From Amoeboaphelidium protococcarum X5 (lineage: Eukaryota > Fungi > Aphelidiomycota): a stretch of 64,000 nt of DNA. The first letter of the stretch is position 1. The number at the start of each line of letters is the position of its first letter. Location of the stretch: positions 717,147 to 781,146 of the forward strand of contig JALDTO010000155.1 in NCBI GenBank assembly GCA_023515725.1, written 5' to 3'. The translations under genes were made by a program, and so were the position numbers. Shown here one piece after another: positions 4,365 to 58,700 of the stretch. The notes under the pieces were generated by a model. The model was given only the letters and a program-made list of their open reading frames with translations, did not search any database and had not been told where the DNA came from.

Positions 4365-7300
4365 ATGGATGTTAATTCTGCTGCATTTTGGATTGCAAAA
4401 CTGCAATAGAAATTGAGTGCACAGCCGTTCCAGAAATTGAATCAAGTGGAGGCGTAAGCCATGGTGAATGTGGTGCATCAGTTGAAATAGAATCCATTGA
4501 CTGCTCATTCTACCGATTACCTTCTTCTACTGGAGTTGGTCAAGTAGTATTAGGCTGCCTTGATGCTACGTAATTAATAGAATTAGATTCTCGCAGCTGG
4601 TTAATAGTAGATTCCTCTCCAATAGTAGTAATAGTAGATGGCTCATCATCTTGTTTAGTAGTAGTAATAGTAGTAGTAGTAGTAGCAATAGTAATAGCTA
4701 TAATAGCAAACTTCTGCTTCATCTCCTACTGCATCTGTCGCACCCAGTACGGATGGTGGTAAAGTTTAACCTGCGTCGTTTAATCCAACCAAAGTTGCGT
4801 TTAATGATATGTAAGCTAAATTGCTCAAGCTGCAGATTGCCGCATATCGTTACTTGTCCAAAAATGTTCCCGTTCCCGCGCAGATATTGGCTGCTATTGC
4901 TACGCTGGAGAAGTAGCTCTCTGAAGATGGTGCTGCCTCTGTCGATACATTTACTTAATCGACTTTGGAGTTTGCATAAAAGTTTCAGAATGCTAAAAAT
5001 CAGTATGATAAGCAGCAAGTAGTTGAGGAGTAGAATGGAGGCGCAGACTCGGAGAATCCGTAGCATGAAGCGTATAAGCACTTGGTCAATGGTGAAAAGT
5101 TATCTAATCAGCGTCTGCTTGTACCATCCATAATGCCTGCCGGCTTAGATCCATTAACGTTGCGTAATGAACGCGAAAGTAGAATCAAGAGTAGAATAGC
5201 GCAACGTATTCAAGAGTTGGAGTCTATGCCATTGGATGATTTGCCTGATGGAGTCTCTGGTGACAATCAACAGGGCGATGACACATCCAGCTCTCGCTTG
5301 AATGCTATAATCGAGTTGAAGTCGCTGCGCCTATTGGAAAAGTAGAAGGCCTTACGCGCACAGATTCTATCAACTTATAATCAGCAGACGTCGCTGTAGA
5401 CTGCGTTATCTCGTCATGATTACCGCAGAGCTAAGAAGACATCTGTGCGTGAGATCCGCGTCACTGAGAAGATGGAAAGATAGCAGCGTGTAGAGAGAGA
5501 GAAGAAGGAGAAGTAGAAGCACTATGATTATCTCAACTCGGTCTGCACTTGGGGCAAGGAGATGCTGGCTAATAGGAAAGCTCTGTCGGCAAAGTAGATG
5601 AAGCTTGGTCGTGCAGTCCTGCACTGGCATACCAATGTTGAGAAGGAGGAAGCCAAGAAGTAGGAGAGATTGGCCAAGGAGCGTATCAAGGCTTTGAAGG
5701 CTGATGATGAAGAGGCTTACTTGAAGTTGTTGGACAAGTAGAAGGATACTCGTTTGACGCATCTGCTATCGTAGACGGACTCCTACTTGGACACGTTATC
5801 CACTCTGGTCCAGGCTCAGCAGGATCATATTGCATCTCAAGAGTAACAATCTTCTCTTCCACCTGCTAAGCCTACCGACTTTGGTATGGGACAAGATGAG
5901 GCTATCGACAAGTAGGATTATTATAGTATGTCGCATCGTATCAGAGAGCCAGTGACACAATAGCCAAGTATAATGGTTGGCGGTACTTTGAAAGAGTACC
6001 AGTTGAAAGGGTTAGAGTGGATGGTGTCTCTGTACAATAACAAGTTGAATGGTATTCTGGCTGATGAGATGGGTTTGGGTAAGACTATCCAGACCATCTC
6101 TTTGATTTCATTTCTGATTGAAAAGAAGAATTAAAATGGACCGTATTTGGTTATTGTGCCGCTATCTACTATAACTAATTGGTCGATGGAGTTTGAAAAA
6201 TGGGCACCATCTATTGTGAAGGTGGTGTATAAAGGGAGCCAGTAGTAGAGAAAGAGTATTCAAGCCAGTGAGTTGAGACATAGTAATTTCAATGTTCTGT
6301 TGACAACGTATGAGTATATCATCAAAGACAAAAGTGTATTGGGCAAGTACAAATGGGTGTACACTATTATCGATGAAGGTCACAGAATGAAGAATGCTCA
6401 TAGCAAATTGTCAATTACCTTGACTTAATTCTATTCATCCAGATATCGTTTGATTTTGACTGGAACTCCACTGTAAAATAATCTACCTGAATTATGGGCT
6501 CTATTGAACTTTGTGCTGCCAAAGGTTTTCAACTCTGTAAAGACGTTTGACGACTGGTTCAATACTCCGTTTGCCAACACTGGTGAGAAGATTGAGCTGA
6601 ATGAGGAAGAGCAGCTGCTGATCATTAAGCGTTTGCACAAGGTGCTTCGTCCGTTCTTACTCCGCCGTCTGAAGAAGGATGTGGAGTCTGACTTGCCGGA
6701 TAAGACTGAGCGTATTTTGAAAACTAACTTATCGGCATTGTAGTAGAAATTGTATAGCCAGGTGCGTCAATCTGGTGCTATGATGATTTCTTCCGGTGGC
6801 AATGGTAAGAAAGTGGGTGTTCGTAGTATTAATAATACGGTGATGTAGTTAAGAAAGATTTGTAACCATCCGTTTGTATTTGAGGAGGTTGAGGATGCTA
6901 TTAATCCATCAAGACTGACTAATGATTTCATCTACCGTACTAGTGGCAAGTTTGAATTACTTAATCGTATTTTGCCCAAGTTCAAGGCCACTAACCATCG
7001 TATTTTGATATTCTTTTAGATGACGCACGTGATGGACATTATGGAAGACTTTTTGAGACTTCGCGGCTTCAAGTATTTGCGTCTAGACGGTTCCACCAAG
7101 TCTGAGGACCGTTCTGCTCTGTTAAAGTTGTACAATGCGCCTGATTCTGATTACTTCATATTTATTCTGAGTACTAGAGCTGGTGGCTTGGGGTTGAATC
7201 TGCAATCTGCTGATACTGTGATCATATTTGACTCTGATTGGAATCCTACTCAAGATCTCTAGGCTCAGGATAGAGCTCACAGAATTGGTTAGACGAAAGA

Positions 7301-46917: not shown

Positions 46918-48678
46918 ATGAGGAGTAAACAGTTATTGTATTGCATTATAATTTTGATGATGGGAGTGATGATGATGCTAGATGCTGCAGCTGTAGTGGC
47001 AGGATAAAGTAAAGACCGTCAGCATATTGTGATTATAGATGCTGGCAGTTCTGGCAGTCGAGTGTATGTATATGATGCCAAGTCGTTCCAAGTGCTGTAC
47101 AATGACAAAGTTACTCCTGGATTGAGTACAATAATAAATTTCAATACAACGTTTCTGCATTCAAAAGTTCATGATTTGTCTAATATGAATGCAATGGCCG
47201 CCGTAGAACCGGAAATTGTTCAATTTTAAAATGTTGTAACTACATATTGGACTAAATTGCTCAGTAAAGTGATTGCAAAGTATAAAGACGATTTTGCTTT
47301 TTATATCTATGCTACTGCTGGTATGAGAATAATTGATAGTAAAGATGCGCACCTCATATTTAATGTAACTGCTGCGGTCCTGCGAGATTTGATGCCGTCC
47401 CCTCATACGATTGAAGATGGAAATTTGAAAATCATCTCTGGACAAGAAGAGGGACTGTATGGCTGGATATCTCTCAATTATCTCACACATACTCTATACC
47501 AAGATTATACAGTTGGATTTCTGGATATGGGAGGTGCCTCTGCCCAAATTGCCTTTCAGCCATCGCCAGATCAGGTTCTTTTACACGGCAATGATTGCGT
47601 TAATATAAGTGTCGTGGATTTTACACACTCAAGTAAGTAAGCGATATTCAATCACACTATATACACCACTTCTTTCTTGGGATTTGGTGCTAATTAAGCA
47701 CGCAAGAACTATGTTGAATAGGTACTCCAAGATCAAACCGTAGATCCATGCCTTCCTTAGGGATTCAAGACTGATGTTGCGACTTCCACTGCACATAAAA
47801 GCGTCAAAGGCGATGGTGATTACGATAAATGCCGGGAGAGTTTAGTTCCGCTTTTGCATAAAGAGGCCAAGTGTGACGATATTCCATGCATTTTCAATGG
47901 CGTCCACTCCCCCGAGATTCCCTTTGATGAGATGCCGTTCTATGGTGTTTCCGAGTATTACTACGTATCTCATGATTATGGTCTAGATGGTGTGTACAAT
48001 AGTTAGAAATTCGATGAAGCTGCTAAAAAGTCTTGTGCAAATTACAGTAAGAATGATAAAAGTACAGAGTTGTCCTGCTTCAAGTCTTCCTGGGTCAGTG
48101 TGATGCTTCACGATGGATTCGGATATAAGAGCACTTTTTAAGATTTCAAATCGGTGCTAGAAATTAACGATACCGATGTGAGCTGGACTCTTGGTGCGGT
48201 TATTTACTTATCTAGTAAAACTTTTATCAGCGGTATGAAATTGGCTGGTATTGATGGACAGAATAAGGGGAAATCTGGTAATAATAAGGCGGCCATACTC
48301 ACATTCCTTCTCATGACTGGTTTAATCCTGACTGTAGCATTCGGTTATAGAAGATGGCGGAGAGGTGGCAATTCCAGGAATGGTGGATCCAGAGGGAATA
48401 ATGGTGTAGTTGACTGGATGAATAGACGGCGGTATGTGCCATTAGATCTTGAAAGCTCTGGATTGGACTCGTCTGCTGCAGTTGGAGTGGACGCAATTCC
48501 TTTAAACAGTACCAAGAGCAGAAGTTCAGCACCACCTGTATTCTTTAATCAATCAATGTCCTCATCATCAGTTAACGCAAGGACTGGAAGTCCTCTTCTA
48601 CTGGCAGCATTAAATGGTTCAGCTGGTGAGGCGCGACTGAAAAGGGACAGCAAGATCATTCTTGACAAGATCAAATGA
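46918..48678 (+). CDS. YND1: Golgi apyrase, GDA1/CD39 family (Ynd1-like)
   Basis: Apyrase regions IIDAGSSGSRVYVY, ATAGMR, SGQEEGLYGWISLNY, DMGGASAQ and VSWTLGA, with an N-terminal signal and a C-terminal TM plus cytosolic tail. Confidence 0.88.
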
Positions 48679-48740
48679 TCATCAAGTCAATATATCACAT
48701 CATCATACTTTATTGAGTTCATTCAGACATACTAGCGGCA

Positions 48741-49466
48741 TCATTACTCTGTTGCAATCTTTGTTATTTCATAATCATTCAAAAGATCCGTGTCGGAATA
48801 TATTCGCAGCAAGTTATTCACATGCGCGATAGATTAGAATACAATAAGAGCAGATTTACCCTTTTTAGACATGACAATATGCTCCACAGGACCACCATAT
48901 TTCGTACATAGAGACTCAAGGTCATTTTACGACGGCTTGATCTTTTTTATATCCCACTTGAATCTCAGAGTCCTCTACTCTGAAGAATCATTAAAGTCCA
49001 CAGATTATTTGTCGGCATTTGATGCTTACTATTATGTAACATTAGAGGACAATCGCGCGTTCAATATCTCATTCTCCATTCGTTCACGCCATGACACGTT
49101 CTACTGCTTTAGTCTATCAAGTTCACGTCGCAGTGCTTCTTGAGCGGTCACTTCAGCTGTATTGAACGCGGCAGATTCGCGATCATCCAAATCTTCTTTC
49201 ATCCGCCTACGCTTGGCATCCATCAATCGTGTCCTCTATGCTCGAGCCTTATTCAGTTCATACAGCCTGTCAAATGCTTGCCGTGCACTTTCATCCATAA
49301 GAATCTGGTAAGCCTTATTAATCTGCTAGAACATCTCCACCGCTCCTTCATCTCGATTCTTGTCAGGATGGTACTTTAATGACAGCAATCTATAACTCTT
49401 TTTAATTTCAGCATCAGTGACTTAAGCCTTTAATCCCAGCACCGCATAATAATCAATAAAATCCAT
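48741..49466 (-). CDS. CWC23: J-domain splicing factor Cwc23/DNAJC17
   Basis: DYYAVLG...[23 protein letters not shown] coiled coil and RRM-like LRFKW...[10 protein letters not shown]. Confidence 0.85.
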
Positions 49467-49763
49467 TTTAAATTACAGGTGCACTTGCTTGATCAATGAA
49501 TGAAGAAACGAAAAACGACGCGAACAGGCAGTTTCAGCGTGAACGCGCAGATGAAGTTTGACGCGTTTGATGATCAGCGAGATTTACCGCGTTGACACAA
49601 GAACTAGTTTCAAGTCCAGATTGACTGGATTGATGATTTACTCTATATACGGGAGGCATCAACCTGCATAAAAGGAGATGAAAATGTTCATTACTTCTCA
49701 TCCTCATTCAATCCATTTCTATTATCGCTGATAATAATACCAAATACTAATCTAATCCTGAAA

Positions 49764-50372
49764 ATGAAAGTTTTACTACTGGGAACGTTGTTGTTCGTGC
49801 TGTCTATCACTGCTCAAGATGGTCCAACTTACACTGATGTTACTGATGGTGGCTACATTGGTATCGATCCTATCTACGGCGAGTACGATGATGGCAAGAA
49901 GGTTGACAAGAAGAAGGACTACGAGAAGGATTATGGCAAGAAGGATTATGAAAAAGATTATGGTATGAAAGATTACGAGAAGAAGGATTACGAGGAGAAG
50001 GACTACGGAAAGAAGGACTATGAGAAGAAGGACTATGAGAAGAAGGACGATTATGAAAAGAAGGACGATTATGAAATCAATGGTCGTAGCGGATTCCCCT
50101 ATCCTCCATTCATTGGGCGGTTCACTCCGGCTGCGTGCCCGAATCTGAAGAGATGTAGAAATCCGCAAATTCGTAACCTGACTCCATTTGGCAGACCATC
50201 CTTTGTACAATCTGGCCCATCTGGTTTGATTTGCATCTATGGTTCCAATGCGAGTGCTTGCCAGTTTGATGCTAGCTCCCAGTTCTGCGCGTTCTTGACT
50301 CTGAACAAGTATTTTGGTCCTGATAGAGTTGTGACTGGACCTACTGGACAGGCTATCATTCTAGGCTGTTGA
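49764..50372 (+). CDS. Secreted protein with KKDYE/KDYG repeats and a 6-Cys C-terminal domain (family copy 1)
   Basis: Signal peptide MKVLLLGTLLFVLSITA, about 11 repeats, then CPNLKRC...LICIYG...ACQF...QFCAF...LGC. Confidence 0.85.
   Translation: MKVLLLGTLLFVLSITAQDGPTYTDVTDGGYIGIDPIYGEYDDGKKVDKKKDYEKDYGKKDYEKDYGMKDYEKKDYEEKDYGKKDYEKKDYEKKDDYEKKDDYEINGRSGFPYPPFIGRFTPAACPNLKRCRNPQIRNLTPFGRPSFVQSGPSGLICIYGSNASACQFDASSQFCAFLTLNKYFGPDRVVTGPTGQAIILGC
49909..50075 (+). repeat. Coding tandem repeat of 12-18 nt units (aagaaggaytatgar-like)
   Basis: Encodes KKDYE KDYG KKDYE KDYG MKDYE KKDYEE KDYG KKDYE KKDYE KKDDYE KKDDYE. Confidence 0.9.
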
Positions 50373-50649
50373 TTGATTTGTGCTTTCTGAGCTGATTGTG
50401 AACTTTTGAATATCTGAATATGAATGAATGAATGTATGAAATGAAGAAATACAATTGAATCAATTTTGATCTACAATTTACTCTTTGATGCGTCAATCTT
50501 CCATTAGATATCTCTTTGCTATAGCAGTACTTCTTACATTTTAGGGATTGCCATTGCATCAAAGCCCTTTGACCGTATCAAAACATGTTGAAGATATAAC
50601 GCGTTATTCATTCAAACTTGGTGGGCTCAAACCTGATTTTTTTGTTGTA

Positions 50650-51843
50650 CAATGTCTGTCGAGACAAGGTGTCGAGCAATTGAAATATAGGCAAAGACAC
50701 CTTGAAATATAAGTTTTAGTATCACGAGTGAAATAACGACAAATACCAAGCAAACGCCATATTTAGCCTCATTATATGTGCGAAGTAGATTTATTAACTC
50801 CCACGATAAAAATAGTAGATTAGATCTCTGTTACTTTGTATAGTCTTGACGACACATCTCAAGTAAAACAATGAAACTTTTGGGGAAATTATAACCCGTC
50901 AAGCAAGGGTCGTTGTCCAGGTTGATACTGCTTGCAATGAACGTATAACTCTGTGACACTATAAATAGAGCCAGCTGGTGGTCAAAAGCCGGACCGTGGT
51001 ATTCTATGGCTGGGACTTGCTGTTTCTCTCGCTGCAGTACATGGTTGTATAACTGAAATAATACCGCCGGAATATCTATCTATCCTTGGATGTCCGCAAT
51101 ACTGTAAGCAGCTTTTGTGACTTTCCGCTCAAGAACTGACTCAGAGCGCTTGTTTGCTCATAATTATTTCTAAAAATGCAAACTGTTTGAAAAAATGTAA
51201 TATTTGCATCCAATTATCCGCATGCTAACTCCTCAGCTGTTTTTGGTCCAAATGATATATATTACGTCATTCCTTTTGGTATGGAGAATAACTTGAGATC
51301 TTATACAGCTAGAAAGGTTGGTGGTGGATTTTGAGAAATCACTGTAGTCTTATGGCTAAGTGGCTGGCATTTATGGATTAAAAGATTATCCAAAATTATG
51401 GTCGACTTTGGCTGGGTTGAATCGAAATTGAGGAGACTTACAATATATCCGGTAAGGGTATTAACTGTTACATGTCAATGGGTCAGAATTTGTGTCGTTT
51501 GAAAGATATATAAATGTAATTGCCGCTGGAGCTGGAGTAACTGATGTGTTGAATGGGACACAGTAAGCTCCGACTGTATCGCGTAACTTTAGGCATTATG
51601 CAACTTGTTTGGGATGGAGCTAGTAGGTTATGCGTAATGGAATTGGTATCGCTAAGCAGTTACTCAACTTAATATGCTGATTGAGAACTCCTGTGCTCCC
51701 TTGTTAGCAAGATAGATCACCTAGTTGATGTAGCCAAATGAACGCATGGAGCACTTAAAGTTATTTAGTAACTCCGTCGCGAGAAAGACGTTTTTTTAGC
51801 TGACAAGTATGATCAGTGGAATTGGCGTGTCAAGCTTGCATGA
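50650..51843 (+). pseudogene. Tyrosine recombinase relic
   Basis: VVDFEKSLQSYG (catalytic Lys region, about 51321-51356), TVSRNFRHYAT (HxxRH-type box, AGG at 51591) and, after a frameshift, LVSKIDHLVDVAK*TH (H...Y box, about 51703-51750). Several TGA codons and frameshifts. Confidence 0.5.
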
Positions 51844-51884
51844 AGCTCCCCGAGACGCAATCGATGCATTGAGATGCATTCGGA

Positions 51885-53977
51885 ATGTATGCGACTATTG
51901 ACATTGACTCTGCTGAGATGTAATACAGTGCGAAAGGCGGCAGTTTGTTTACTCCATATACAATTAGGATAATGAAGAGCACTCCGGAAGCCAAACAGAG
52001 GATAGCAAAGCTGGAAGATTTATACAAGCCATTTGTTATTGGCAGTGGATGGAAGTTTATCTGCTCAGTACTATCTCACTGAACAGATCTTGGCGTCACG
52101 CGTATATCATGAGTTTAAATATCGCTTAGAAGGCAATGAAGTAAATGATATAGATTTGAATTTTTTGGGTTTGGATTAGACTTTAATTGATAGGCTATTC
52201 AGACCGTTTAAGGGTGCAAATCAAGGCCATGAATTGTGGGAGCAGGGAAATCCGAGTAATATTCACCAGCTTAATTCTGTAAAAGAGAGTTCTTTGATTA
52301 CAAGGCGAATATTCGGTGTGGATCTGGGATATCTCATCCCACGAACAGCCTGCTTACTCCAGAATTGGTTAAAGCTGTATCTGGACAATACTTTGTTGCT
52401 TTAAGAGGACGTATCAAGGCAAACTTTGATTTGGTTTTGATTCGATTCCTAAGGGCGTGTATAAATCTAGAGTCAAAGAAGTCAAAGATTTGCTTTAAAT
52501 AAAGCTTAAAAAGGCTGAGATAGCATTTTACCGGCTGCCTGAGAGAGAATGTCCCTTTAGATTCTAATGAAATTAAGCCTGCATTGTTTGGCGAGTTCTC
52601 TGAGTAGTGGAGAGCTATATTTTTTCGCGCTTGTGATGCTGCATTCCAGAAAGCTCGGAACTATTTGATCAATCATCGCCCTCAAAGTATTACTAATTTG
52701 AATATCCAACAATATTTTGTCATTATGTAATGCTTGCTACGTGATATTGATGATATTTCAGAGTTGATTGGCGTGTATAAGACTGTCTGCTTGGTCCCTG
52801 CTTTCAAAGTAGGATGTCAGAATATGCTCATTAATCAGTCCTATTTTTCACACTGTGGTGATCAACATCTGGCACAACAAGACTGGGCTAATCAACTGTT
52901 TGACTTTGAACGTTGCAGAATTCCTGCTACCAAGTCTTTCTACACTGATATGTTCTCGGTGTCTTTCATCTGTAGACGTGATGCGGATGGTCAAGTTGAT
53001 GATGACGATCAGATGTTTGTCTAAGCTGCCGCCGACGAAAGCCACTTTGACGAGGCTTAAGTAGAAGAAGGCGAATTGGAAGATGAGGAGGAGCAACTGG
53101 AGAGATTGATTCGCCTGCCTTGGACTATTCCCTATCGGATTGAAGCCAGAGTACGGCAGTTGAGTCGTGCAAATTTTACAGATGACATTCCTCAAGACCG
53201 CGAAGGACTAACTTTTATTGGATTTGATGGTAACGTTAGATGCGGTGGCAGTGTAGTAAAGATGCGTTTAACCGGTGAGGATCCTTTGGTGTAGCTTGAT
53301 AGAATGAGACTTGGCATCAATGACTTGGGACTAGACGTTTATGCTGAGTTAGATGAATGGGAAGCTCTAGATGGATTTCACATCACTAATATGGGATAAA
53401 GAACCCCGGTTAGGAAGACTGAAGTTGCGGTGACTCTGTCATAAGGCCGGTCTCGCAAAACTGTGGATCTTGAAAGGTATATCCGGTACGCTAAGGAATA
53501 CCATTGTAAGAGAGGAGATGGTATCGTATACTCGCTAATGGACAATCGACGCGAGGAACGCTATAATGCTTGGTTTTATCGCCGTTCACTTTTGCTGAAA
53601 GCTTTTAAAAAACTGCTAGGGACCAATAGTCTGATGTACGAGGACAGGTAGAAGTTTGTCGTGATTTTTGGAGAGGCTGGAAAGTCAGGCTTTTACAATT
53701 TTGGACGGAAGCGGCGTGCTCCTGTTGCTGAGTTTAGACGCATATTAAACAATTATTCAGTCGTTAAATTAACGCGCGAGAATTGGTCAAGTTAGAGGTG
53801 CTGCCAATGTCCTGATTTGTCAATTGAAGTGAGAATTTGGCTGATGGCTTAGACGCATTTCATTGTCATTATGGCCACCAAGCTGATGGAGATTTAAATG
53901 CTGCAGCGAATATCCTCTATATTGGACTCTACATGATGAATAACGGACTCTTCCCAAAGATCTTTGTCAATCTTTGA
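51885..53977 (+). pseudogene. Fanzor1 (TnpB-derived RNA-guided RuvC nuclease), frameshifted
   Basis: RuvC-I FIGFDGN (D at 53226), FVVIFGEAG...RRAPVAEFRRIL, RuvC-II KLTRENWSS(TAG=Q)RCCQC (E at 53778), then after a frameshift HCHYGHQADGDLNAAANILYIG...P (D at 53891). Further frameshifts near 52050 and 52280; start approximate; about 700 aa when reconstructed. Confidence 0.85.
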
Positions 53978-54343
53978 ATGAGTCTGTAAACGAGAAATTC
54001 ATTTCTTGAACTTAATTACGTTGCTGAATATTATTGCATTTTACGCCAATATCACAAATTGATTGATTTGGATAAGTTCAAACAGTGACACGAGATGTTC
54101 GACTTGAACTCATCGACGGCACAAACATAGAAAACACCATGATAATCGTTACTGTATTGTGGCTGCACATAGACGACTCAGTCGTTGGGTCTTTCTTTTC
54201 AGGAGTTCTGGTCCTTTACCTGCCCACAATGACTTGAGCGCCTAACAGACATGTTCTGTCCGCCCGATGACCTCACTTTTCATTGACTGGGCTCATCCTT
54301 CGGCGTCTGCGCGTGGGAAAAAGGGGGAATATTGAGCAGGATC
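53978..54343 (+). ncRNA. Candidate Fanzor omega-RNA scaffold (element right end)
   Basis: Stems: TTGAACTTA 54006-14 with TAAGTTCAA 54073-81; GCCCA-CAATGA 54222-32 with TCATTG-AC-TGGGC 54280-92; GCTCA-TCCTTC 54291-301 with GGGGGA...TGAGC 54323-37; GGTCCT 54210-15 with AGGATC 54338-43. Position matches TnpB/Fanzor omega-RNAs. Confidence 0.6.
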
Positions 54344-54643
54344 TGCAGCAGCGGCTATACCTCGTTCCCATATCCTCCATTCATTGGACGTTTCACTCCG
54401 GCTGCGTGTCCAAATCTGAAGAGATGTAGAAATTCTTAGATTCGTAACTTGACTCCATTTGGCAGACCAACCTTTGTACAATCTGGCCCATCTGGTTTGA
54501 TTTGCATCTATGGTTCCAATGCGAGTGCTTGCCAGTTTGATGCTAGCTCTTAGTTCTGCGCGTTCCTGACTCTGAACAAGTATTTCGGTCCTGATAGAGT
54601 TGTGACTGGACCTACTGGACAGGCTACTCTTATGGGTTGTTGA
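54344..54643 (+). pseudogene. 5'-truncated copy 2 of the secreted 6-Cys protein
   Basis: Near-identical to 50093-50372 from FPYPP onward. No ATG or signal peptide: the upstream in-frame TGA is at 54284, inside the element end. Confidence 0.85.
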
Positions 54644-54916
54644 TTGTAAAATGGCGATGTAGCACGATACATGAATATCGATGAATGATGATTAAATTGC
54701 AATGTAGAAACTTGATTTAAAACTTTGTCTTTAGCGCGTTTTATCTTTCGATTGCTTTATAGTTTATTTACCATACTGGATTGCAATAACGAAAGCTCTA
54801 TTGACACAAAACATCTAGAAATTTTAAATCCAGTAGACCGTCACAAAAAATCAATTTAGCTTTTTCCGAATTGGTATACAATCAAACTGGCCAGAAAATT
54901 GCGATGATTTCCAGTG

Positions 54917-54988
54917 TCTCCAATAGCATAGTGGTAATGCGTCTCACTTGTAATGAGAAGATCCTTAGTTCAATTCTGAGTTGGAGCA
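54917..54988 (+). tRNA. tRNA-Thr(UGU), intronless, with U1-C72 mismatch
   Basis: Acceptor (T)CTCCAA/TTGGAG(C), D-arm GCAT-AGTGGTA-ATGC, anticodon arm TCTCA-CTTGTAA-TGAGA, T-arm CTTAG-TTCAATT-CTGAG, followed by an oligo-T Pol III terminator. Confidence 0.92.
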
Positions 54989-55177
54989 TTTTTTTGCCAC
55001 TTTGATTTTAACAACAAAGCATCATTGATGAACATTGATCTCATCAGAACCAGTTCTGTGATATATCAATCACTTTATAAGCTTATATCCATGCTATATT
55101 TCCCTCTTCTCTCTATCCGTGTACCGCTTGTCTCAACTTCAACAATAATAGTTATAAGAATAACACTTTTAAATAAA

Positions 55178-55474
55178 ATGGTCAGCTATATCTCTGTTGT
55201 ATTGTCTACTCTGGTGGTTGTGGCATACGCGTTTGTCCCTTCTCAGTGCCCAACACTAAGTCAATGCAGTAATCCTTAGATCAATTAATTGGGTCAGCCG
55301 ACATTTGTTTCAAGCGCTCCTGCTGGTCTGATCTGCATCTACGGTAACAATACCAATTCCTGTCTGTTCAGTGTTGCGTCTCAATTGTGTGCATTCCAGA
55401 CACAACGCGTCTATCTGGGTCCTGAGAATATCACATTGACTCCTGATGGTTAAGTTCAATTGAAAGGATGCTGA
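55178..55474 (+). CDS. Small secreted 6-Cys protein (family copy 3, no repeats)
   Basis: MVSYISVVLSTLVVVAYA-FVPSQCPTLSQCSNPQINQLGQPTFVSSAPAGLICIYGNNTNSCLFSVASQLCAFQTQRVYLGPENITLTPDGQVQLKGC; all six Cys align with copy 1. Confidence 0.85.
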
Positions 55475-55732
55475 ATTCCCATGAAATGAGAATCACTTGC
55501 AGTAATAAAAATATTGAAAATTAGATATAATAGACTTTATGAATATGACATATTGGCGCGTCATTTACTCTTGAAGTTGTCTATCTTCATCGTCTTGAAA
55601 CGAAAAACAGATTTCCTTCAAACGGCCGTCTCTTCACAGTTAAAAATCTCTTCACGCGACTCATTTCTTCCTAAAACAATCACTGTTAGTAATTTAACTC
55701 AACTTATCTATCATCTTGATAAATAATTGATT

Positions 55733-58700
55733 ATGGCAGAGGAGTAAGATTTTACAAAGCTTCCTCTGGATTAGTTACTTAGTCATAAACTTTGGAAAGC
55801 TAGAGTACAGGGCTATGAGCAACTGTCTCAGGTAGTTTTGAAAGATGGTAAAATCCCGCCATTTGCATTGGATGTCATTAAGACGTGCTGTGGTGATAGT
55901 AATGTTGCTGCTCAAGAGTCTGCTCTTTAGTTACTGCTTTCCATTATTCAAGTGGATGAGGTTCATCCAATCTTGTTAAAAATGCGTGTTCATATTTCCA
56001 AACTCATTGTGGATAAATGCTTAAAAAGTCCTCGAGCCTCTTTGCGGTAAAAGTCTGCAGATTTACTACTGGCTTTAATTGATCTTGACACTCCAGATGC
56101 TATTGTGGAAGTCATCATAGAAGGTACCGGGAGCAAGTAGCCGAAAGTGGTTTGCGCGTGTCTAGCTATACTGAACGACATTGTAAAGTTTTACGGGTCG
56201 TAGACTGTGGATTGTAAACCAATATTCAAAGTCTTGCCACAGATGTTTGCTCATTCCGATGCTTTGGTCCGCAATGAGGCTTAATAGCTCGCAGTCTCGA
56301 TATTTCAGTGGATTGGTCTGAAGCCATTTGAATCTGTTCTATATCCACTATTAAAGCCTGTACAAATGTCTTAGCTCAATGAAGCATTCGATACTGTTAA
56401 AGATGTAAAGTTGGTTCAGACTAGATTTCTCAATAAATAAAAGGATCGCTAATAGACAGTATAAAGTGGCGATGATATTTAAATTGACGTTGATTAGGAA
56501 GCTGTTGGTGGTGAGTAATAGAGCGATTAACTAGCGGAAGAATTGGATTTCACTGAGCCTGTAGACGTTCTGAGTAATGTTCCCGCTGATATTGAAGATT
56601 AATTGAGTTAGATCAAGTGGAAAGATAAGAAAGAGGCTTTGGATAATCTCTGTAAAATTCTTGATGCACCAAAGTATGTTAAAGGGAATTTTCATCCACT
56701 TCTGAGCGTGTTATGTAAGAAGGTTGGAGATATCAATATTGCAGTTGCGGTAAGTGCTATTTAATGTGTGGAAAAAATTGCCAGCGGATTAAAATAAGAT
56801 TTTCCATAGTTTAAGAATGATGTAAAGTAATCTTTATTGGATCGGTTGAAAGAGAAGAAGTAGAATGTCATCTAAGCTCTGAGATTAACATTAGATGCGG
56901 TGTATCAGTTTTGTAAAGATGTAGATGTTTTTGCAGATATTATACCATATCTTGGTAATAAAGTTCCTTAAGTTCGCTCAGAAGTACTTCTTGTCTGTGT
57001 CAGGTATGTTCAGGGTCATAAACTAACAATGTAAAGAGCTGATGCAAAGCAATTTATACCGCCAGTCGTTTAATGCCTAGATGACGCGACACCGGAGGTT
57101 AGAGATGCTGCTGCTGAGGTTCTTGGCTCTTTGCAGTCTAAGCTAGCCTCCGGACTTTTATAGCCTTATTTAGATGGTTTGGACTAGATTAAGTTGGACA
57201 AGATTAAAAGCTTTGGATCCTAAGCTTAGTAGTATTAGTAGACTGTTGTCCCTAAAAATGCTCCTTCTTCTACCTCCTCTACTTCAGGAAAGTTGTCACA
57301 GGGTAAAGAGAATTCTCTTCCTCAATCTAGTATTAACCGTGCATTGAAAAGTAAGCCTGTTAGTTTAACTGCGGTGTCTGCTGGGAAGTTCAATGTTGCG
57401 AAAGTTAAAACATCTACTGTTGTCACAAAGAAGTCAAAATCTTAGTCTTAAAATTCAACTTCTCCTCCTGCAAAGTAAAAGTCGCGATAATCTATTGGTG
57501 GAAGTTAAGCTGTGATGATGTCCTGGACAGAGGAAGATGCAAAAGAAGAAGGTCTCAAATACTTTTAATCGTTTGATGCTAATTTAGGTAGCTCTAACTG
57601 GAAAGAGAGATTAGAAGCTGTATCTCTCTTGCTTGAATTTGATCATGCTTAATCATTGAAAGATGTCAAAGCACCTGTGGAATTGCTCTTCAAGTATCTG
57701 GAGGCAAAGGCTGTTTGGACAGATTCAAATTTTCAAGTTATGAGTAAGCTGTTTACATTGTTTAAGGAATTAGCGCAACGCGAATAGGCACCTATGGTTG
57801 ACCGTGCGGCTGCTTCTCTGTGTGTACCTTTACTATATGACAAGATTGGCGATATTAAGTTGTAGAAGGTCTCTGTTGAAGCTTTGAATTCAATTATGGA
57901 GCAATGTGGTTGTGGTTTTGTTTTATCAATTCTACCTACGTCGCTGAAAAAGTAGAAATCGCCAAAGTACATTGCGGAACTATTAAAGTTTGCATCAAGT
58001 GCTCTAAATGATTTTGGACTCACCACCGACTTGGATTTAGTTTCATTGGTTGCTGCAATGAAGGAATGTATTGGTAATGCTAATGCATAAGTAAGAACAG
58101 CTGCGCTTGGGCTTGCAAGAACTTTGAGAATATTCGTCGGGCCTGATATTACATCTATGCTTGATGGTCTGGGCGCCTCATAAATGTCTCTTCTGTAGGC
58201 AGAATTCGATAAGGTTGTTGACGTCGCAAAGCCAGAGCCGACTAAATTGTAAAAGTCGTCTTCTATGAATGTAGACTCTGCCTCTTCTGCTGTAGATTTG
58301 ACTTAATTAGTACCTCCCAAAGATATTATGGCTCTTTTACCTGATACTGTGATATAAGATCTTGCGGATAGTAACTGGAAGGTTCGGAAAGAAGCTCTTG
58401 ACTCCATTCAAGACATTTTGAAGACGTGTTCAACCATAGTTCTGCCTCCTGCAGATTTTATTGAGAATGTTTTTGCACTAATGAAGGATCATAACAAGAA
58501 TTTAGTGATCCAAGTGTTGGATATCATTGGTAAATTGTCCGCAGCTGCTTCCAAGTAGATATTTAATCTTGTCAAGTCTCAATTTGAGTCCATTATCGCA
58601 AATTACACGGACAAGAAGTAGGCAGTTAAAGTGGCTGTATCTGAGTGTTTGGTTGCTTTGATTTCGGCTTTCAAAACTGTTCAAGTTAAAGAGCTATTCC

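Follow-up and report, generated by a model that had tools for sequence, protein, structure and literature searches.

The 64,000-nucleotide stretch of Amoeboaphelidium protococcarum DNA that we analysed (the window) contains a Fanzor-type gene that once worked and is now broken; the segment in which it lies is not the same in the two homoeologs. The best joint explanation of the evidence, and in our view very probably the right one, is that the sequence at 51885/51918-53977 is a Fanzor1 pseudogene, the relic of a mobile element. With TAA and TAG (TAR) read as Gln, this interval gave a Fanzor-type protein of ~690 residues that is interrupted by three single-base breaks (Table 1).

Table 1. Features of the Fanzor locus, in window coordinates
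Feature	Position	Strand	Basis or content
Segment absent from homoeologous locus C146:1018432-1024153	50494..54347		3.85 kb; C146 alignment
Left flanking direct repeat	50094..50375	+	3' half of KKDY-repeat secreted-protein gene (49764-50372)
Right flanking repeat	54349..54646	+	second copy of that gene, truncated at its 5' end; coding part 93% alike
Upstream ORF with breaks, member of a small repeat family	50931..51900	+	tyrosine-recombinase-like motif by eye only
Piece 1, N-terminus	51885..52061	+	likely start ATG 51918, then a TAA=Gln codon; aligns to C69, C264 and C155:119k N-termini
Piece 2	52066..52296	+	downstream of one-base frame break near 52062; alignment to relatives
Piece 3	52299..53831	+	REC/WED-like region, acidic linker, RuvC-I (D53226, DGN), bridge helix, VVIFGEAG strand, alternative Glu (E53778), CxxC
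Piece 4	53834..53977	+	C-x3-H zinc knuckle half, RuvC-III (D53891, G-D), TGA stop; PF07282 E 0.0033
3' segment, near probable right end	54153..54341		85% to C98 copy; no folding signal, z = +0.68

Reconstruction of the gene and its genetic code

The frame 52233-53933 in translation table 6 was open for 567 codons, with 15 TAA/TAG and no TGA, and the portion alignable to relatives began at 52299. The FIGFDGN, VVIFGEAG and RENWSSQRCCQC motifs all lie inside this frame. An earlier note on this DNA had joined fragments at 52734, 53076 and 53463 into one frame; they do share one, and it is longer than the note said. Alignment to relatives pushed the 5' end of the gene out to about 51918 (or 51885) and placed the single-base breaks near 52062, 52297 and 53833, which agrees with the count of at least three frameshifts given in that note. 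The tail (53843-53971) is in a separate frame and matched PF07282 by itself, below the cut-off as a fragment.

The joined read-through was aligned with an X at each break, and database queries were stop-free pieces or NCBI paralogs. The read-through aligned with KAI3637405.1 over 659 residues (26%, E 1e-50), and KAI3642987.1 as the query matched the locus as four pieces in the correct order (E 3e-5, 8e-9, 3e-24 and 9e-6), its residues 27-98 pairing with 52015-52227. Based on these alignments, we conclude that the likeness of the reading frames is not due to chance.

UAR is reported to encode Gln in A. protococcarum (PMC5304391), and TAR makes up 58% of the Gln codons in long host ORFs. Where TAR codons were altered between the members of five homoeologous ORF pairs (two of them Fanzors), 13 of the 20 changes were to CAA/CAG. 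TGA is 47% of the regional stop triplets, yet the read-through contains none, against 13 TAR (P about 3e-4). These counts bear out the TAR=Gln reading that had been proposed from the letters.

The gene was under selection in this code. The dN/dS of the window copy was 0.23 (p 3e-5) relative to an 87%-identical copy on C98, indicating that the gene was once functional in the code of its host; for the C69/C264 pair it was 0.33 (p 3e-12). The Gln of SSQRC is a TAG in both the window and C98 copies, which have three TAR codons in common in total, and with the dN/dS of 0.23 this shared TAG indicates that TAG was read as Gln at a time when selection acted on the gene. These results support an element that was recoded and functional here, as had been claimed in placing its recoding during residence in this host, and they do not date the recoding. 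The Gln of the motif had also been called conserved; it is TAG-encoded, but it is Lys in C69/C264 and Ser in KAI3642987.1. At shared Gln columns TAR and CAR interchange among copies, and the Gln of N-[ML]-G-Q is TAA in 4 of the 4 long copies in the genome, with 27-33% identity between lineages.

An element that came dead from a standard-code donor might in principle look similar, with its TAR codons being nonsense mutations of decay: a single C-to-T change converts CAR to TAR, and TAR makes up 13 of the 37 Gln codons in the window copy, which is below the host value of 0.58 (p 0.007). We give this explanation almost no weight and regard it as already refuted. None of the 13 'stops' is TGA, the three TAR codons are common to a C98 copy that gives a dN/dS of 0.23, TAR is present in both C69 and C264 at 46 of 56 comparisons at TAR codons, and the unbroken relative KAI3642987.1 has 26 TAR in a 664-codon frame. 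It is fair to infer from a gene written in TAR=Gln that it would not easily move to standard-code hosts, as had been suggested.

Codon usage in other Fanzors of the genome differed. A young multi-copy family (L007-L015, L017-L019 and L048) consists of near-identical copies with RTSQRC...HRDVNAARNI. TAR is 4 of its 21 Gln codons, compared to 0.58 in host genes (p 5e-4), and the family appears to have entered recently from a donor with the standard code. At the end of 12 of the 71 long table-6 frames in the window and the fetched loci, including KAI3642987.1 and the young family, there is a TAR directly before the TGA. These terminal codons are possibly relics of an old stop codon.

Family identity and relatives

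The published fingerprint of Fanzors (PMC10711439) has two parts: DPG at RuvC-I ('near exclusively'), and a Glu located six residues ahead of CxxC. The sequence E-N-W-S-S-Q-R-C at 53778 has this alternative RuvC-II Glu six residues before CxxC, and the Glu is invariant in the aphelid subfamily described below. The Fanzor-type RuvC layout with a Glu before the knuckle, which the earlier note had recognized, thus stands by the published fingerprint, as does its claim that the three acidic residues are retained (GAT at 53226, GAG at 53778 and GAT at 53891). The RuvC-I column is DGN in the window copy, DVG in C69/C264, and DPG in KAI3637405.1 and KAI3642987.1. From these sequences, DPG appears to be present in the subfamily and to have drifted to DGN in the window copy, where half of the fingerprint is lacking. 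DGN, G-D and the CxxC...C..H knuckle had all been listed as divergent features of this copy; the last two are traits of the subfamily.

Every subfamily member seen has Gly in place of the Arg that precedes the RuvC-III Asp, and the copies are few and old. This G-D, along with the DGN here, could point to RNA-guided DNA binders, weak as nucleases or domesticated, and not to cutters. We consider this quite improbable, as no full copy has lost any of the three acidic residues, and the copies are mostly broken and dispersed, like selfish elements. D-x-N alone is no sign of death, because SpuFz1 binds Mg through D383 and N385 (PMC10432273).

Profile comparisons were consistent with assignment to the Fanzor/TnpB group. 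The C98 sister (31.8 bits) and KAI3642987.1 (27.5 bits) both scored over the PF07282 cut-off. Compared with TnpB and Cas12f (AsCas12f1, PDB 8J12; PF07282; NF040570), RuvC-I and the knuckle/RuvC-III region align (E 2e-4 and E 2e-5), with both regions in register in the match of the subfamily profile to AsCas12f1 (E 2e-4). TnpB and Cas12f differ in having the canonical RuvC-II Glu, in their size (about 400-430 aa) and in being prokaryotic. In the ESM Atlas, the clusters nearest to KAI3642987.1 were PF26935+PF07282 giant-virus proteins of 606-656 aa (score 0.98), at a recognition of 2288, slightly below the 2300 mark. Two AlphaFold models of the intact relative had pLDDT of 46.9 and 49.9, too poor to judge convergence of the D-E-D residues. 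The best rows in Foldseek with these low-confidence models were Cas12/TnpB/GtFz (E 0.05-1, none significant), and VIA-align was uninformative.

Proteins of this kind were 626-697 aa long, and no serine-recombinase neighbour (no IS607 TnpA) was seen. Length, layout and the Atlas neighbours favour a Fanzor1 over a long Fanzor2, an assignment that stays provisional with a tree that holds aphelid copies only. The locus is eukaryotic and not a bacterial contaminant: it is in a 1.15-Mb host contig, with host genes on both sides, homoeologous flanks and the host code.

Known Fanzor1 proteins (SpuFz1 of Spizellomyces punctatus, GtFz1 and CrFNuc; PMC10432273, PMC10530073, PMC10711439) are alike in length (about 630-690 aa) and in having a long N-terminal region followed by RuvC-I, the knuckle and RuvC-III. 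In them, as in the window copy, a small residue replaces the canonical RuvC-II Glu and an alternative Glu is found six residues before CxxC. The aphelid subfamily also resembles Fanzor1 in having many partial copies per genome, and a Helitron link is known for CrFNuc. Unlike these Fanzor1 proteins, the window gene is in the TAR=Gln code, has G-D in place of R-D and C-x3-5-H as the second half of the knuckle, has a D-to-E spacing of 171-184 residues and DGN in this copy, and is broken, with terminal repeats and omegaRNA not located.

There were 41 PF07282 matches in the genome, belonging to several families. The window copy falls in a tree clade (support 95/99) with C98:883k, the homoeolog pair C69/C264, C155:119k and KAI3642987.1. 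Searching 1.84 billion proteins with a profile of the stop-free pieces gave four real matches, all from A. protococcarum, the best being KAI3637405.1. No relatives were found outside A. protococcarum, a weak blank from searches that reach only close relatives or one length range. KAI3642987.1 and KAI3637405.1 (MP228_012542 and MIR68_004054) belong to the same subfamily, with the same G-D and His knuckle, and align with the window copy, the former at 38% over its C-terminal 217 residues and the latter at 26% over 659. Both differ from the window copy in keeping DPG and in still having remains of a downstream ORF, and KAI3642987.1 differs also in being one unbroken frame that adjoins a Helitron Rep/PIF1 gene. 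Intact copies from which a consensus might be built had been proposed as a check; no near-identical intact copy was found in the genome, and the sole DNA match was the 5'-truncated C98 copy. The relative at G000:C98:1474637-1476628 (minus strand) has a reported 669-aa open frame, and the same match row lists 3 internal TGA; this genome thus probably has an intact copy there.

In the other subfamily copies, the Fanzor gene is followed on the same strand by what is left of an unknown ORF, at L058:10696-11082, L046:6190-6570, L037:3448-3834 and L005:6038-6208 (24-33% identity) and probably also at L045 (about 6000-6500). They are absent from the window.

The earlier note had described the gene as hidden, and invisible to standard-code surveys. 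This is true of the broken copy alone. Its longest standard-code piece is 97 aa and the ORF limit of one survey is 100 residues (PMC10530073), so it would escape a standard-code ORF scan. The description fails for the family, because paralogs are full-length in NCBI nr as hypothetical proteins (KAI3637405.1, 626 aa, and KAI3642987.1, 639 aa) and one of them is over the PF07282 cut-off. Published Fanzor surveys worked from annotated proteins, and an accessible part of the table of Saito et al. 2023 includes the A. occidentale Fanzors KAI3658238.1 and KAI3657820.1. These are from the same genus, and the sequence displayed there ends in a K-D knuckle/RuvC-III, unlike the subfamily. We found no literature naming Fanzor together with Amoeboaphelidium in the main text.

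Reality of the breaks and present state of the locus

The breaks are genomic. A short-read contig of 3,479 nt (depth 80), probably from the source sample, spans 50986-54464 and matches it base for base, with 0 differences and 0 gaps. This confirmed the breaks, for which a check of the reads at the indels had been proposed, and ruled out assembly error as their source. Run X7 (another sample of the species) gave a gap-free contig over 51897-52079 that shares the break near 52062. Runs X5 and X7 (two other samples) both have one extra base at 52297 and no break there, which makes that break specific to the present strain. The break at 53833 is also found in run X5, and run X7 has more indels at 52844-52906, with 53504-54116 uncovered. 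Given the first break and the added indels in X7 and the third break in X5, both of the alleles that can be read from DNA are also broken. The C98 copy continues in a single frame through the point equivalent to 53833, with one extra base at about 53833.

We conclude that the locus very probably makes no nuclease today, because the break near 52062 leads to a TGA after 52079, where translation now stops. The alternative, that the locus is still functional through splicing, editing or frameshifting at the breaks or through an intact allele in other strains, is very unlikely. It would fit with the retained catalytic residues and with the NCBI model of the C155:119k paralog, which spans its own break by a called intron. 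It would also fit with run X6 (kind unknown, patchy RNA-like cover), in which 53243-54300 is thinly covered and contains 3 gap letters. Against it, the breaks are single-base differences relative to relatives, and the runs that cover them in other samples are broken in turn, by the shared 53833 break in X5 and by the additional indels, beside an uncovered stretch, in X7. An intron across the 53833 break was ruled out: the GT..AG candidates there are 24 and 54 nt, multiples of three, and their removal leaves the frame unchanged. The 3' part of the locus in run X6 was at a depth of about 6, and may reflect transcription in another strain.

The extra segment and its possible carrier

The homoeologous locus matches the flanks of the segment (47500-50493 at 87% and 54348-57400 at 86%). 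Against the background of this species and the homoeolog matches, we interpret such 86-89% pairs as corresponding halves of a genome that is duplicated or hybrid. The difference may reflect gain of the segment here or its loss from C146. We found no terminal inverted repeats for 50494-54347, only chance 7-9-mers, and no target-site duplication at the segment. The direct repeat that flanks it was rejected as a simple target duplication, because it consists of a host gene copied in tandem, in which divergence is much greater in the 3' untranslated parts than in the coding parts. Loose ends of short-read contig sequence are at 54361-54365, in the right repeat copy.

There was no conserved sequence 3' of the stop across six copies that might indicate an omegaRNA. 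Folding of the right end gave z of -1.0 and +0.7, with one compensatory pair in two sequences.

The surrounding DNA has three related secreted-protein gene copies: the KKDY-repeat gene, the truncated copy and a third at about 55180-55470. A tRNA-Thr(UGU) gene (54917-54988) is between the last two. This tRNA gene was rejected as a target, as it is in host DNA shared with C146. Targeting of tRNA genes in general was rejected as well: the tRNA-linked copies, near tRNA-Leu/Ser genes, belong to a sister Fanzor family (L039, L040 and L047), and there are none at L037, L045, L046 or L058. At about 881.2-883.0k and 888.9-890.6k of G000:C98 (L005/L006) there is a 1.76-kb inverted duplication (97%) bearing another KKDY-type gene. 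Its inner end is the point of 5' truncation of the C98 Fanzor copy.

A Helitron is associated with one relative. At L058:2252-9995 (GCA_023515745.1, JALECJ010000258.1), KAI3642987.1 is head to head with a Helitron Rep/PIF1 frame of 1,147 codons (table 6), with a gene for 250 aa between them. Within the subfamily, L058 is the most promising candidate for an element that is still active. An association of Fanzor1 with Helitrons is already known (PMC10530073). No Helitron genes were found near the window copy, with no PF14214 or RepHel match in or near the window.

The window copy might instead have been carried by a tyrosine-recombinase (Crypton-like) element, with the ORF at 50.9-51.9 kb as the recombinase and the 3.85-kb segment as one transposon. 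This concerns the carrier and is compatible with a Fanzor1 pseudogene; we regard it as possible but doubtful. The ORF is on the same strand as the Fanzor gene, reaches its start and is inside the segment missing from C146. It belongs to a repeat family (69-77% DNA look-alikes in C212, C192 and C249, and protein matches of 52-63% in the same three for the piece 51191-51331) and has an R-S-Y-T-A-R-K motif that resembles, by eye, an HxxR box. Crypton-Fanzor pairs are known (PMC10530073). However, short stop-free pieces of the ORF matched nothing among Pfam, NCBIfam, PHROGs and PF00589 profiles, and the relatives of the ORF (C192:899-907k, C212:318k and C249:465k) adjoin no Fanzor match. No other subfamily copy has this ORF upstream, so it may be a separate insertion. 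In runs X5 and X7, the depth at 51519-51730, in the ORF, was raised three- to fourfold, indicating that this part is multi-copy in other strains and single in this one.

Known Fanzor/TnpB biology suggests how the element may have worked before it decayed. The intact protein of ~690 aa would have bound an omegaRNA from the right end of the element, with a guide from the DNA flanking the element, and its D/E/D RuvC centre would have cut element-free target sites next to a TAM. Cutting of such sites would have helped the element to be copied or retained. Its movement would have been the work of a partner enzyme, which for the unbroken relative would be the neighbouring Helitron Rep/helicase and for the window copy might be the product of the now decayed upstream ORF. 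The break near 52062, by stopping translation early, would account for the present lack of nuclease.

A more speculative and rather unlikely proposal is that an aphelid-specific Fanzor1 subfamily, with G-D in RuvC-III and a His knuckle, switched carriers within one host, so that one lineage travelled with a Helitron and the copy here with a tyrosine-recombinase element, and that its guide helped to reshape the secreted-protein cluster. As the right end abuts the truncated secreted-protein gene, the guide would then have targeted that gene family. If this is true, the reshaping would comprise the duplication here, the single unit in the homoeolog and the inverted duplication at the C98 copy.

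The window copy, a pseudogene, matters little in itself. It indicates that a Fanzor did work under selection in a TAR=Gln genome, and it points to an unnamed aphelid Fanzor1 subfamily with assayable members, including at least one unbroken and Helitron-linked (KAI3642987.1) and probably C98:1474637-1476628. For assays of activity, the unbroken relatives are better targets than the pseudogene in the window. The TAR share of Gln codons varies among the Fanzor families of this genome, and could act as a residence-time clock for such elements in a recoded host.
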